Positions 1,060-18,197 are shown, numbered from the stretch's first letter. The stretch: 64,000 nucleotides of DNA from Oopsacas minuta (GCA_024704765.1 JAKMXF010000144.1:1-64000); one strand, 5' to 3'. The notes: generated by a model from the sequence alone, not told the origin. Translations and numbers: made by a program.

Positions 1060-3747
1060 CCCTTTCTCTCTTGCCTCCCTGGTAAAAAGAGACTTCATCC
1101 TTGTGGCATCACTGTAGGAATAAAATAGGATACAAGATGCCACTTCACCATCTCTACCAGCTCTGCCACTTTCCTGATAGTAACCCTCAAGGCTCTTAGG
1201 CATGCTATGATGTATCACGAACCTACACACACGACATTAACACCTGTAGGTGGCAGAGTGGCATTTTCTCACCTCACATCCGGTTTATCTATTCCCATAC
1301 CAAAAGCAATAGTGGCACAAATTACTCTGTATTGCTGAGAGAGCCATTTCTTCTGAACAGATGTTCTATCTGTGTCACTCATTCCCGCATGATAGGGGGC
1401 TGATGTGACACCGACACAGGACAGTGCGCTACTCACAGTCTCACAGTCCTTCCGTGACAGACAATAAATAATTCCAGACAGTCCGTCGAATTCAGTTCTA
1501 ATCAGCTGTAATATATCATTATTAACAGTGCTAGGCTTCTTCCTTCTGATCTCATATTTCAGGTTAGTACGGTTACATGACCCTACGTACCTGTTAAAAG
1601 GGTATAAGGATTGGTAGATAGGACCGCTAAGGGTATGAGACCAGTTCACACGTTATGTAACAGTACAAAGGAGAGAGAGAGTAATTCTATACAATAACCT
1701 ATAGCTGACCGTTAAATAGTTATTAATTATAATAGGAACTAAGGGGATTAAACTAGAACTAATTTACCATTTAGTGTCGTTAAGCTTCAGAAGACGTGCT
1801 ACATCAAACCTCACAGTTTTAGTGGCAGTAGCAGTCAATGCCACAATTTGAACACCTCTAAAAGTGTCCTTCAATTCTGACAGTCTCTTGTAATCTGGTC
1901 TAAAAATAGAACAGTCATGATAGGGTAACAATAAGTGGGCAGATTAATAGTACCCATGTACCCATGGTACCTTAATCACCCCTGTAAAATAGGTGAAAAA
2001 TGTGTCGCTACCTGAAGTCATGTCCCCACTGAGATATACAATGTGCTTCATCTATAACAACTCTATCCAGACAACCTCTGTCACGTAAGGAATGTAGGAC
2101 AGATTTGAGTTTATTACTACAAGTCAATTTCTCAGGTGTCAAGTAGACCAATTTATATAACGGATTATGTTTGGATAATTGGAAGTATACAGCCTGTTCC
2201 TCTGTAGCTGATTGCCCGCCAGAAAGGTGAGCTGCTTGTACCTGTAGTGACACAATTATAACACCTTCAGGGCACATTCACAGATGGTTACCTGCAGGAC
2301 GTGTAGTCTCTGTACTTGATCTAATATGAGAGAGCGGAGAGGTGATATCACAATTGTAACACCTTTTGATAATATAGCAGGAATCTGGTAACAAAGACTC
2401 TTACCTACACGACACAAACAGGTGTTAAAGTATCATAAAGCGATACAATTGTGCCACTTCTCTCACCTCCTCCAGTTGGCATCAATATGAACACATCATG
2501 TCCTAGCATGACTGCATTAATTGCTTCCTCCTGATTTGCTCTGTAACTCTTGAGACCAAAAGTACGAGCAAATTCCAATCTCATCATTTGGGAGTGAGGG
2601 TACTGACCTTTGAATGACTCTTGTGTCACCGTGCCACTTATTGCGTCACTTGTGTATCTGCTGCTAGATACCGCAGAATCCTTAACTGGTAGTTTGAAAG
2701 GTTTGAAAAGTGGCAAAGATGGCTGAGTGACACAATTAGTTTGCACTAATGGTGACATATTAGTGGCAGAACGTGTCGTTATTTGTGTACTAGTGTGAAG
2801 TGGTTCATAATGTGTCTCTATAGAATCAGTCATTTCTCCTACCTCTTCAGAGGAGAATAAGAATTCTATACTGTCTAAGGATTCGTCAAATTCAGGTGGT
2901 TTAGGTGGCGGTGTGCCACTTGATGCCACTGGACATATTTCCATCCTAAAGGTATGAAAATATGAACTATACGCTTGAAAATATTTCTAACAAACTCACC
3001 TCTGAGACAAGAGTTCGCCAATTCGGGCCCCATTGAATCCTTTAATTTTAGAAAGTTCAGATTGTGGCATTCGTGATAACATTCTACAAATGTTCTCTGT
3101 TGCTACGTACCACTCCTTTGTCACTTCTACCATCTCGGGAAGTGGATCAATTTGTGTCGGATTATGAGGGCCACTTGCAGTGATACAAGTGGCATGTGGT
3201 GGTACATCAACACCAGGATACCTCGTTGTGGTGAGGCGACACAATTGTTTGCTCAGATGAGGCGAATTGGTGGCACAAATATCTTCTAATTCTAACTTAA
3301 AATTCTGAGAAGTGTCGCGTCTCTGTCTCTTATGAGGAAATGAGGAAGATGTGTCGTCGTTAAGCTTCAAGAGATGGGAATTAGTGGCAGATGTGTCGAG
3401 ATTAATTGGCTTTGAATAAGGTGTGTTAGTGACAGATGCGTCGCCTTGAGAATACATAACTGGAAGAGGCGGGGAACTACACTCATCAGCTGATAACTCA
3501 ACACTATCCTAAAGATAATATCTATAAATAGAACACACAAACTTTCCAAACTAACTCACATCTATCATTATTGGATTATTTAACATTCCATCTGGTTGCT
3601 GGGGAGATATCTATAAATAGGATGAAATTAATAGGTGTTAAGTGTAGATAGTTCCGGTATAGATTGACTCACATACATTCCATTCTTAACCTCCTGTTGC
3701 TTAGCAACCGTGACATACGGGATAGTATTCTGTAAACTTGGATGTGT
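1060..3747 (-). CDS. BLM: Bloom-syndrome-type RecQ helicase, multi-exon; 3' part (RQC/HRDC) not in window, start uncertain
   Basis: GT-AG exons 3747-3673, 3610-3560, 3508-3000, 2945-2467, 2404-2292, 2241-2012, 1899-1768, 1590-1273 and 1222-1060 join in frame. Motifs: [72 protein letters not shown]. Confidence 0.88.
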
Positions 3748-4670
3748 CTATAATAAAAATATAAAATGAAATTTTAGAGGTGTTAAGTCAGAGTAGAACA
3801 GCTGATCTGTCTCAAGAGGACACTCGTGGACAGAGAAAAATGTCCTCCTGTGTACAGGTCACAATTATTACAATCAACTCCTGGTATATCAACACGGATA
3901 TATGAAATGCCCGCTTATACCAAAACTTCAAAGTAACATATTACCGATTGTATTATTGGGTCCCGTGTGGGGATGGATATAAAGGTTAATTGTATTTGAA
4001 AATTATCCTTAAGGAAAAGAGGGAGGAGAGGGAGAGGGGAGGGGTCAGAGAGACACTAATTAGTGACTCTATGACCCATACAACAGCTGTAGTATACTGA
4101 ATTAATAAATACACCATGGATAATAGAATTATAATATTATTGGAGATGTATAAATTAGCTGCCTTATCATAGTAACGGTTAATCTCAATAGGAATTCATA
4201 ATATATATGATATACATGATACATACCATCAGATGTCTGTAGAAACCCTATTATAAGTCTGAGTGTTAGCTAATTGAATTATTATAAAACAATATGAGAT
4301 TACAGGAATTGTGTCGCACTGCCACGTGGCTATAAAATGGACACAATTTGTATATAAGAACAATGTATGACTAGACAGGAGCCAATCAAATGCGCTGTTA
4401 TAGCGAATAGTTGGCATTCATTAGATGCATTGATGAAAGGTGTGAAAAGTGTCACTTTTGAGCCACCCAATGGCACAGTAATGTGTCACAATATGAACTA
4501 AAAGGTGTGAATGCAGAATATGATTAATTAGCAAATAAATGAAGTAAAATCATAATTACCAATAAAGTTCTATTTTGAAGATTCATATAAGAATCTTAAC
4601 AACCATATTTGAATTTGGAATGCTATTAAAAATATAAACAACATTTAATATTTGTCCCAGGGGGTCAAAA

Positions 4671-16340: not shown

Positions 16341-16490
16341 ATAGGTGTTAAACAGCTATATAATGTGAATAACAATAAATAGGAAATTCGTCACACGATA
16401 AGCTACAACAATTGGAACTAGAACTAAAGGAGTGAAAATGTGATAAAATGAAATACAGCAGCGCTTAAAAATATACAAATATACAATTTA

Positions 16491-18197
16491 TCATAGAATA
16501 AAATCAAGAGAATTGTTAGACTCCCATTCATGAGTGTCCTCATCTGAGAGAGGTTCATCTGGACAGAATAGAGTCAGCTGATTATTACGCGCCAGAATAA
16601 AGGCGCGTAATAACGCTTCTAAAGAATTTTCACAACAATCAAATCCTTCTATAGAATAGGCGCCAGAAGTGTCGCTATTAATCCTATGGTGTCGTATGCC
16701 ATCTTCCATGTGGATAGATAGAGCTAATTTATCAGGACTTGACTCCCGAAACCTTACAAGGAATGTTCCCACTGCCATCCCGCGTAATATCTCCTCTGCG
16801 TCCTGTCTGGATATGGACCTAAGGATGGACCGCTTGAGACAGGAAATGGGTAGAGGGAATAGTTCTGGTTCCGTTATATTCATATGTTTTGACACTTCTA
16901 CCAATTTGCCAGGTACAGTATGAGTTCTTTTGGGCAGCAGAGGTGGCATAGTGTCCACATTTTCATAGTCCGGTGTGACACTGTGACATCCGTTAGTGGC
17001 AGTCTTTGGTTCCGTATTAGTGTCAGGTGGCACGTATAGTTCCATATTTCCAGGCCATATAGTGAGACGTGGCAGGGTGGTGTTCAAGAAAGAATTCTTC
17101 CTATCCAAACTGGAATGGAAATTCATAGGTGTCAAATGTGGCGTAGAAGTGTCGGGGGAGTGTCTCTCAGACAGGACAGAGAGTGCAGGTTGTATACGGG
17201 TGTTAATCCAGTGAAGTGGTTGATTTGTGTCACGTGATAACTTAGCTAGACTATGTGGCAGAGAGGTGGATCTATGAAACTTAGGGGGCCTTACTAGTTC
17301 TAATAACGAGGTGTTAAGAACATCTAGAGACGTGGGATTATAGAAGGGACACTGTAGGAAATTGGCATAGTTATCAAGCTGAGAAGAGGTGTTACTATGT
17401 CCTGTGTAGTCCAGAGAGGACAGGTCCTGGAACTTGTCAGAATGGGAGAGGGCATCTAGCGTCTCCAGGTTATCCATACCACCTGTCCTCTCTAGGTGTT
17501 GCTTAGGTTTCTGTTGTCGATGGAGAGCTGTGGATATGTCTGGAAGGGAAATTATGTCAGCGTCTATATCCTCTTGTGACAGACAAGGCACAGGTGTCAT
17601 AAGTGGCACAGGGGTAGGTGGCGCTGATTCGTACCACCTCATGTTATTAAGTGGGAGGTGACAATCCGCCAGAGACCTCCTCCTGAACAGACTCCTTGTA
17701 CCCAGATCCATCTCCGCGGGAGTGGGAGAGGAATCTGTAGATCGGGTTCCGATTGTCCGTCTACAGAACTGTACGTATTCAGAAGGGGCACCGATGAAGA
17801 AATCGTCCGCGTACCGCCCTAGAGATCCGATTGAGGATACGGAGCTGATGGAGTACACGGACCGCTGGGAAGCCTGGCGCTTAGGTGACACTGATTTCGA
17901 CGCCTCAAGAATATGCATCATCCATGTGGCACGATGTAGCTCATTTGGCGCACGGAAGTGGTGTGTGGTCTTACCCATATGGAGAGAGAATTGGTAATTA
18001 TTCCGTTTTGATTTTCCCATTTTACAAGTGGCAGATTCGTGAATGTGGATTTGTGTCGGATTAGCGTTAAAATCGTGAAATAAGAAAAGTTGTCGACCCA
18101 GTAGTTGTACAAAGTAACACTTCCACCGCTTTAATTTCATCTCTAGGTGTCCCTCAAGGAGGCTCAGGCCACCTATGCCACTAGGATATACTTGCAT
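16491..18197 (-). CDS. Intronless PH + Pro-rich + SH2 adaptor (SH3BP2-like architecture)
   Basis: 568-aa ORF. N-terminal PH domain (LEGHLEMKLKRWKCYFVQL..FRAPNELHRATWMMHIL), C-terminal SH2 (ISRQDAEEIL..GTFLVRFRES), and YENV and PPLLPKR motifs. Confidence 0.8.
   Translation of the reverse strand: MQVYPSGIGGLSLLEGHLEMKLKRWKCYFVQLLGRQLFLFHDFNANPTQIHIHESATCKMGKSKRNNYQFSLHMGKTTHHFRAPNELHRATWMMHILEASKSVSPKRQASQRSVYSISSVSSIGSLGRYADDFFIGAPSEYVQFCRRTIGTRSTDSSPTPAEMDLGTRSLFRRRSLADCHLPLNNMRWYESAPPTPVPLMTPVPCLSQEDIDADIISLPDISTALHRQQKPKQHLERTGGMDNLETLDALSHSDKFQDLSSLDYTGHSNTSSQLDNYANFLQCPFYNPTSLDVLNTSLLELVRPPKFHRSTSLPHSLAKLSRDTNQPLHWINTRIQPALSVLSERHSPDTSTPHLTPMNFHSSLDRKNSFLNTTLPRLTIWPGNMELYVPPDTNTEPKTATNGCHSVTPDYENVDTMPPLLPKRTHTVPGKLVEVSKHMNITEPELFPLPISCLKRSILRSISRQDAEEILRGMAVGTFLVRFRESSPDKLALSIHMEDGIRHHRINSDTSGAYSIEGFDCCENSLEALLRAFILARNNQLTLFCPDEPLSDEDTHEWESNNSLDFIL

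Follow-up and report, generated by a model that had tools for sequence, protein, structure and literature searches.

Why does a single 9-nucleotide word, AGGTGT[G/T]AA, recur about once per kilobase over tens of kilobases of the genome of the glass sponge Oopsacas minuta? The window, that is, the whole 64,000-nucleotide stretch analyzed here (GCA_024704765.1 JAKMXF010000144.1:1-64000), contains 59 exact copies of AGGTGTKAA (the T-box word) on both strands, compared with a mean of 1.57 and a maximum of 5 in 100 dinucleotide-preserving shuffles. The over-representation reported in the initial annotation of the sequence is thus confirmed, and all 21 sites listed there for the 1237–17317 interval are present, 20 at the exact coordinate and one, given as 4502, at 4503. 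The window is made up of a 36,939-bp unit and its tandem duplicate, with 99.83% identity (junction 36939/36940), so that just 33 of the 59 sites, those in 36.9 kb, are independent. The enrichment is sharply specific, restricted to particular domains of the genome, conserved across species and free of strand bias. The explanation favored here, to which we give a little less than an even chance, is that selection retains arrays of factor-binding words, which would mark out a conserved compartment of chromatin or regulation, with AGGTGT[G/T]AA as the word read by T-box factors.

The excess is robust to the choice of the null model. In the 36.9-kb unit, the 33 T-box words compare with 1.0, 1.9, 3.2 and 9.6 expected from simulated Markov chains of orders 1, 3, 4 and 5, respectively, and are well above the order-5 maximum of 18, with the proviso that models of orders 5–6 trained on 37 kb largely memorize the sequence and absorb shorter words. 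It survives, therefore, the high-order Markov test that the initial annotation had proposed and, in exons, the codon-preserving test as well (3 copies compared with 0.3, see below). A scan of single substitutions indicates that position 7 is occupied by G, T or, less often, C, and that the other eight positions are essentially invariant, with the other one-substitution variants of AGGTGT[G/T/c]AA found in 0–3 copies each. The exact words are 30-fold over the expectation and the one-mismatch near-words are approximately at the background level, which argues for upkeep of the words rather than for gradual decay of relics. Apart from a mild preference for A at position -2, the position matrix of the sites carries no information beyond -2 to +9, and it reveals no fixed downstream feature of the kind seen in mini-genes for PIWI-interacting RNAs (piRNAs).

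The T-box word belongs to a set of at least 10 enriched words, so that the focus of the initial annotation on this word alone was too narrow. Unbiased ranking of the k-mers of the unit places AAGTGGCA, a far stronger signal, first (40 versus 0.8), followed by GTGCCACT, CAGCTGAT, TTGTGTCG, TGACGTCA, TGGCGCGT, AGGTGTTA, GGTTGCTA, TTAGTTCC and GGAATGT; the T-box word ranks behind AAGTGGCA, TGTGTCGC and others. The vocabulary, which includes AAGTGGCA(C), (A/T)TGTGTCG(C), AGGTGT[G/T]AA, (T)CAGCTGA, TGACGTCA, GGAATGT, GTTGCTA, GGAACTAA and TGGCGCG, covers ~7% of the bases at ~10 words per kb; the words tend to abut, with gaps of 1–7 nt, and are otherwise evenly spread over 37 kb. When the A-N-G-T-G-N-N-N octamers are tabulated, one large family emerges, built on the template A[A/G/T]GTG[G/T]C[A/C/G]. 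Enrichment of the endings -GA and -TA is seen solely after AGGTGT (49 and 65 copies, compared with 2–13 in the sister templates), so that AGGTGT[G/T]A(A) appears as a motif in its own right rather than as a variant of the GTGKC family. Several other words presumably correspond to classic factor sites, namely the cAMP response element (CRE) TGACGTCA, the E-box CAGCTG and the TEAD-like GGAATG, and matches to the sites of RFX, E2F and NF-Y can be suggested as well.

The identity of the half-site proposed in the initial annotation, Brachyury/TBX, is borne out at the level of sequence. The word fits the consensus AGGTG(T/C)(G/T)A derived for T-box proteins by SELEX, including the G/T choice at position 7, and the Brachyury half-site is AGGTGTGA (PMC4010391). 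The O. minuta genome encodes about four T-box genes (PF00907 matches above the cut-off on contigs C303, C277, C266 and C327), and one T-box 9-mer lies ~175 bp from exon 1 of one of these. The likeness to the T-box binding element extends over the same 8-bp core, and the flanking A preference resembles that of extended half-sites. The differences are the lack of palindromic or tandem pairing, the recurrence of a site roughly every kb across tens of kb with coding exons included, and the location in a block of housekeeping genes.

The words are written into the coding sequence. In 11.5 kb of confident exons, there are 32 copies of GTGGCA, 21 of GTGTCG, 14 of CAGCTGA and 3 of the T-box word, compared with 7.9, 4.5, 2.8 and 0.3, respectively, under synonymous-codon shuffling; overall, the vocabulary is ~4-fold over these shuffles, in several frames and on both strands. 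The strongly conserved domain exons (NHL, kinase, acyl-CoA dehydrogenase (ACAD), WD40) contain few or no words. RNA contigs place sites in exons, introns and spacers, all three as initially claimed: among the nine T-box words placed in this manner, 4958, 6807 and 9867 are exonic, 6506, 9015 and 8575 are intronic, and 4438, 4503 and 6387 fall in untranslated regions (UTRs) or spacers. Within minus-strand genes, there is no strand bias relative to the transcription of the host gene (8:9 for the T-box word, 13:9 for AAGTGGCA, other words likewise), and this symmetry argues for a signal that is read on duplex DNA, not on RNA.

The same data make it very unlikely that the words are RNA-level or splicing signals, that is, AG/GTGTKA donors and TTMAC branch points in introns of 49–57 nt. 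The word at 12323 is indeed a real donor, and those at 6506 and 9015 lie in introns of 55 and 49 nt with TTMAC 15–33 nt from the acceptor, but the sites are also found in exons and spacers without strand bias, the other vocabulary words do not resemble splice signals, and the 6-kb RNA-supported stretch points to most words lying away from donor or branch-point distance. Splice signals, among them the AG/GT junctions considered in the initial annotation, account for at most ~3 of the 33 sites.

The distribution of the words in the genome is patchy. In the whole 61.46-Mb assembly, the T-box word is found 5,238 times compared with 1,601 for its reversed control (3.3-fold), and AAGTGGCAC is found 1,130 times compared with 153 for its control. 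The density of the T-box word is 0.085 per kb genome-wide versus 0.92 per kb here (~11-fold), and that of AAGTGGCAC is 0.018 versus 0.49 per kb. The extent of the dense domains was gauged from 20 sampled 10-kb loci and the listed pattern matches: only a locus on contig C51 and part of that on C12 are window-like, with 4–9 vocabulary words per kb; fifteen loci have 0.7–3 words per kb, with reversed-word controls at 0.3–1.4; and most contain 0–2 T-box copies, near the background. On the contig of the window (C144), the 64–74 kb segment is the tail of the second unit copy, and at 90–100 kb the density is down to 3 per kb. From the excess counts, the dense state is estimated to take up ~2.5–6% of the genome. 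A genome-wide process, as envisaged in the initial annotation, is not supported by this pattern, in which the block is ~11 times the average and most of the sampled loci are near the background, and the accompanying analogy with DNA uptake sequences fails for the same reason.

The mixture of words also varies by region. Contig C3 contains 50 T-box words in 205 kb, yet only 4 copies of AAGTGGCAC, which suggests that the words are independent marks. This bears on the possibility, improbable but worth weighing, that the likeness to the T-box site is coincidental and that the vocabulary is read by a dedicated architectural system, e.g. zinc-finger proteins that define a territory, a pairing region, a replication domain or a compartment. 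Such a system would fit the confinement of the enrichment to domains and its conservation at the domain level, the A-N-G-T-G-K-C-R template shared by the dominant words and their abutment at 8–11 bp periods, the presence of words in exons, which are not spared, the non-developmental gene content, the location of the block <90 kb from a contig end in three assemblies, and the resemblance to the chromosome-restricted motifs of Caenorhabditis elegans. It is harder to reconcile with the strict specificity of AGGTGT[G/T]AA, which matches the T-box consensus and is distinct from the GTGKC family, with the presumed classic factor sites among the other words, or with the T-box words of C3 that come without AAGTGGCAC and argue for independent readers rather than for a single system.

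Repeats are an even less promising source of the words: that they are what remains of a transposon or dispersed repeat family, or of micro-tandem arrays made by slippage, is hardly plausible. A foldback element of ~925 bp, with arms that pair at 88% (L029:973-1897, i.e. G000:C4:53628-54552, and L030), is present elsewhere in the genome in ~98 copies with a 25–26-nt palindrome, GTGCCACTTTTT[G/C]AAAAAGTGGCAC, and has a T-box word in each arm; in addition, a tandem array of ATAAGTGGC is found in another assembly, and words cluster head-to-tail. However, the element shows no similarity to the window and its copies supply a few percent of the genome-wide counts; exact words greatly outnumber the one-mismatch variants, the opposite of what decay would produce; and the positions of the sites are conserved across species. 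A dispersed repeat or miniature inverted-repeat transposable element was rejected on direct comparison as well: when the 33 sites are compared all-against-all with ±100 nt of flank, only the word itself and overlapping neighbors are found in common, so that this explanation, also raised in the initial annotation, is largely refuted for the window. As separate observations, the T-box word held once by each foldback arm is AGGTGTTAA, so that a mobile element carries two host-enriched words, and in locus L022, in the region aligned to ~14128, the 9-bp unit ATAAGTGGC occurs in 3–4 tandem copies at a place occupied by single degenerate GTGGC words in the other species; slippage can thus seed words of the GTGGCA family.

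The window is not an isolated case. When the protein encoded by the nested single-exon TBC1D22 gene was used as an anchor to fetch orthologous loci, orthologs with 77–88% identity were recovered on long contigs of four ENA assemblies, compared with 43–48% identity for the demosponge orthologs. Judging by this identity and by the gene order, which is kept in all four neighborhoods (RecQ/BLM, NHL, kinase, TBC inside SLC41, Spb1, CFAP58, PH-SH2), these assemblies apparently represent other hexactinellids. Three of them are as dense as O. minuta (per 10 kb, 20–23 copies of AGTGGCA, 28–35 of GTGTCG and 5–9 of the T-box word), at a GC content of 48–53% versus 41% in the O. minuta block. In the most distant glass sponge (locus L025, ERZ20067936), the T-box word, GTGGCA, GTGTCG, CAGCTGA and GGAATGT are above the controls and less dense, and AAGTGGCA is not enriched; its place is taken by top words peculiar to this species, ATGGGTCA, GTGACCCA and AGTCGACT. 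The vocabulary thus evolves, with the T-box word retained.

Sparseness is conserved along with density. A sparse control locus, that of saccharopine dehydrogenase, has syntenic orthologous loci in three assemblies, all of them sparse; in one foreign assembly, the dense block ortholog contains 8.8 T-box words and 22.7 copies of AGTGGCA per 10 kb (GC 0.48), compared with 0.9 and 1.4 in the control block ortholog (GC 0.40). The dense state continues outward through ACAD–ARID1 in one species and through UBE4–PMVK–ELO in another, and in the fourth species, the density drops where the synteny ends. That the words are confined to syntenic blocks whose dense or sparse state is the same across species points to a property of the whole block. 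In the TBC1D22 neighborhoods of the demosponge Halichondria (24 kb) and the homoscleromorph Oscarella (22 kb), there is no T-box word and the vocabulary is at the background level, the former providing, for one locus, the demosponge comparison that the initial annotation had suggested.

Synteny and vocabulary recurring in four independent assemblies also leave a negligible chance that the signal is an artefact, i.e. that a mis-assembly or a second organism contributed DNA whose k-mer signature is different. It is true that the block is duplicated and sits at the end of a contig, and that its GC content and words set it apart from most of the assembly. Against this, public runs include DNA as well as RNA contigs that span 4400–10399, NHL genes typical of the genome are present, and the block contains the sole copies, in the 61.46-Mb assembly, of the single-copy ARID1 (BAF250_C) and Spb1 exons, whose presence only here rules out contamination.

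Several peculiarities of the orthologous loci are of note in themselves. Loci L023 and L024 (ERZ25072740) represent the same 21.5-kb block on two contigs with 99.3% identity and 1,036 indel columns; the pair reflects either two haplotigs or recent copying of the block that is also duplicated in O. minuta. The dense blocks in L023 and L022 contain AACAAAC/AACAAC microsatellite expansions, with one 8-mer repeated as many as 160 times in 21.5 kb, that are far weaker in O. minuta. A public run labeled as a different organism (X5) contains contigs 90–95% identical to nearly all of 4400–10399 and probably comes from a close relative of O. minuta, diverged by ~5%.

Conservation is detectable at the level of single sites. 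In a 13.6-kb four-species alignment, 5–6 of the 15 O. minuta T-box words are matched in each species on the same strand within ±12 columns, compared with ~0.1 expected. The T-box word is exactly conserved in 38% of the cases versus 5.4% for same-length flank windows; for all words, the figures are 30% and 9.5% (p about 3e-21), and at sites with poorly conserved flanks, 13% and 2.2% (p about 5e-4), so that the words are 3–7 times more conserved than their own flanks. Turnover is strong, with 68 of the 196 aligned site groups common to at least two species. By parsimony on the same alignment, O. minuta has 47 lineage-specific words versus 4 inferred losses and its sister has 24 versus 21, counts that hinge on the non-coding alignment, which is uncertain, and on the tree assumed, and that hint at a net gain of words.

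Net gain of the word is what the initial annotation had proposed to test for, having suggested a process that fixes protein-bound words, e.g. a mutation or repair bias at bound sites. In a local form, whereby protein-bound words are multiplied by mutation, repair or gene-conversion bias in a GC-rich, perhaps highly recombining compartment and their density is functionless, biased fixation is unlikely, although it deserves serious consideration. Apart from the 47 words against 4 losses, it agrees with the elevated GC content of the dense loci, which lie 4–13 GC points above the controls in every species and have a lower observed/expected CpG ratio, with the presence of words in exons against the codon expectation, and with a comparison of L023 and L024 in which substitutions within words show no clear purifying signal (8 versus 12.7 expected, p=0.10). 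However, AT-rich words, e.g. AGGTGTTAA, cannot be favored by GC-biased conversion, blocks keep their dense or sparse state, and the same vocabulary, in species of very different GC content, and the gain and loss counts carry the uncertainty just mentioned. Bound sites in other organisms tend to have raised, not lowered, mutation rates. The higher conservation of words than of flanks and the conserved state of the blocks fit selection at least as well.

Selective maintenance of factor-binding words, the favored reading, can be spelled out as follows. The vocabulary words would be binding sites for sequence-specific proteins, AGGTGT[G/T]AA for the sponge T-box factors; selection would keep many single sites as well as the overall density; and the dense block, of at least 50 kb, would thereby hold a particular chromatin or regulatory state. 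That the words are actively maintained protein-recognition sites, rather than relics or accidents of composition, is suggested by their sharp specificity, the lack of a decayed halo, the constancy of the vocabulary across base compositions, the positional footprints, the duplex symmetry and the regional independence of the words. Binding by proteins, the role of T-box factors as readers, and a purpose that lies at the domain level are inferred.

Several observations weigh against this reading. Part of the conserved sites are in coding exons, positional conservation would also be expected under a word-biased process, and the L023–L024 comparison is underpowered; the cross-species control consists of one block. 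No enrichment of palindromic or tandem pairs of the T-box word, the arrangement to which T-box proteins bind with high affinity, is seen (an inverted partner within 30 nt at 7 of the 33 sites versus 6.2 at random positions). The T-box genes' own loci, checked for word density, are not dense, so that the idea of autoregulatory targets was rejected, and the genes of the block are of the housekeeping type and not obvious T-box targets. We know of no factor that could be named for the strongest words, AAGTGGCA and TGTGTCGC. Finally, the density of the sites, their extent and their presence in exons go well beyond the known architecture of enhancers and high-occupancy target (HOT) regions.

The last point can be made precise by comparison with known systems. 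In enhancers and HOT regions, many factor-like words are likewise co-enriched and sites are conserved as footprints with turnover, but those regions span 0.2–2 kb, whereas here the density is nearly uniform over at least 37–50 kb, exons are included against the codon expectation, and whole syntenic blocks differ in being dense or sparse. The remark of the initial annotation that the density is far above what enhancers need thus holds, and extends to exons through codon choice. The motifs of C. elegans chromosome domains, namely pairing-center motifs, X-enriched recruitment motifs and the motif upstream of piRNA-cluster genes, are similarly short both-strand words hugely enriched in particular domains, in introns and intergenic regions; in the sponge, there are at least 10 words rather than one per domain, no fixed downstream feature, and exons are included. 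Bacterial DNA uptake sequences and Chi-type words share the property of a short exact word far above chance and tolerated in coding DNA, but are genome-wide and tied to the transformation or recombination machinery, compared with a patchy distribution of many words in an animal nucleus. Duons, factor sites within exons, are also embedded by codon choice, at ~4-fold over synonymous shuffles in the present case; here, the words are far denser and confined to particular blocks and weakly constrained coding segments.

No description of such words was found in two glass-sponge genome papers (including that on Aphrocallistes) or in full-text literature searches. If the words are bound, they would form a conserved array of factor sites denser and larger than any other known to us in an animal, in a lineage that split off close to the root of the animal tree, and one that overrides codon choice. 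It would then become testable how far DNA-level signals shape coding sequences, whether early-animal chromatin domains are specified by site density instead of looping factors, and what T-box proteins did before their role in developmental patterning, with the dense and sparse blocks in five assemblies serving as natural replicates. More tentatively, and on balance doubtfully, glass-sponge genomes might be split into two conserved compartments, one of which, a few percent of the total, would be written throughout, coding sequence included, in a protein-binding vocabulary of about ten words, a domain-scale code for nuclear or chromatin organization, perhaps linked to the syncytial tissue; the ancient T-box site would be among the oldest letters of this code, which, if real, has no described counterpart in other animals. 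For annotators of hexactinellid genomes, the vocabulary is relevant in that it skews k-mer statistics, gene prediction and motif scans there.

The first copy of the word-dense unit occupies positions 1–36939 and contains 9–12 vocabulary words per kb, including the 33 T-box words. The second copy starts at 36940, runs to the end of the window at 64000 and beyond it to ~73.9 kb of the contig, with 26 duplicate T-box words in the window; over 27 kb, the copies differ by 23 substitutions and 30 indel columns. The contig begins inside the unit, so that additional copies, an assembly collapse or a haplotype join are all possible. The genes of the unit encode an NHL protein, a kinase, SLC41/MgtE with the nested TBC1D22, Spb1/FTSJ3, a CFAP58-like protein, a PH-SH2 protein, acyl-CoA dehydrogenase, ARID1, another NHL protein and a WD40 protein. 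The RNA-like contigs of a public run reveal five GT..AG introns in 4400–10399 and indicate that the genes of the block are expressed. Four of the RNA-supported GT..AG introns, all on the minus strand, are tiny, at 49–57 nt (5154–5210, 6478–6532, 9005–9053 and 10152–10205). The SLC41/MgtE intron 6834–8646 (1,813 nt) contains TBC1D22 in full, encoded on the opposite strand as a single exon at 7073–8563 (plus strand) with 14 vocabulary words versus 4.2 under synonymous shuffles.

Individual T-box sites illustrate the range of contexts. Two plus-strand words 65 nt apart (4438 and 4503, spanning 4438–4511) lie in a low-coverage UTR or spacer below the kinase gene. A plus-strand composite of AGGTGTGAA and GTGGCAC (AGGTGTGAAGTGGCAC) at 6387–6402, in the SLC41 3' UTR or spacer, is kept in two other species where the flanks do not align, and hence qualifies as a footprint; at 6395, the last base of the T-box word 6387–6395, the RNA-like contigs from the source sample have a T in place of the A, so that the 9-mer is disrupted in this allele. 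The plus-strand word 6506–6514 falls in the 55-nt intron 6478–6532 of a minus-strand gene, and its reverse complement includes TTCAC ~33 nt upstream of the acceptor, so that it may double as a branch point; the plus-strand word 9015–9023, in the 49-nt intron 9005–9053 of a minus-strand gene, has TTAAC, in its reverse complement, ~15 nt from the acceptor and is lost in the other species. Two words in coding exons, 6807–6815 (plus strand, SLC41/MgtE) and 9867–9875 (minus strand, Spb1/FTSJ3), are kept in all three aligned species. A minus-strand word at 8575–8583, followed by AAGTGGCA, lies just past the stop codon of the nested TBC gene, inside the host intron. The minus-strand word 12323–12331 is the true AG/GT donor of the minus-strand Spb1 gene, and the orthologs keep AG/GT, two of them with a different intron start. 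In the minus-strand word 15755–15763, position 7 is T here and G, the other allowed variant, in two species.

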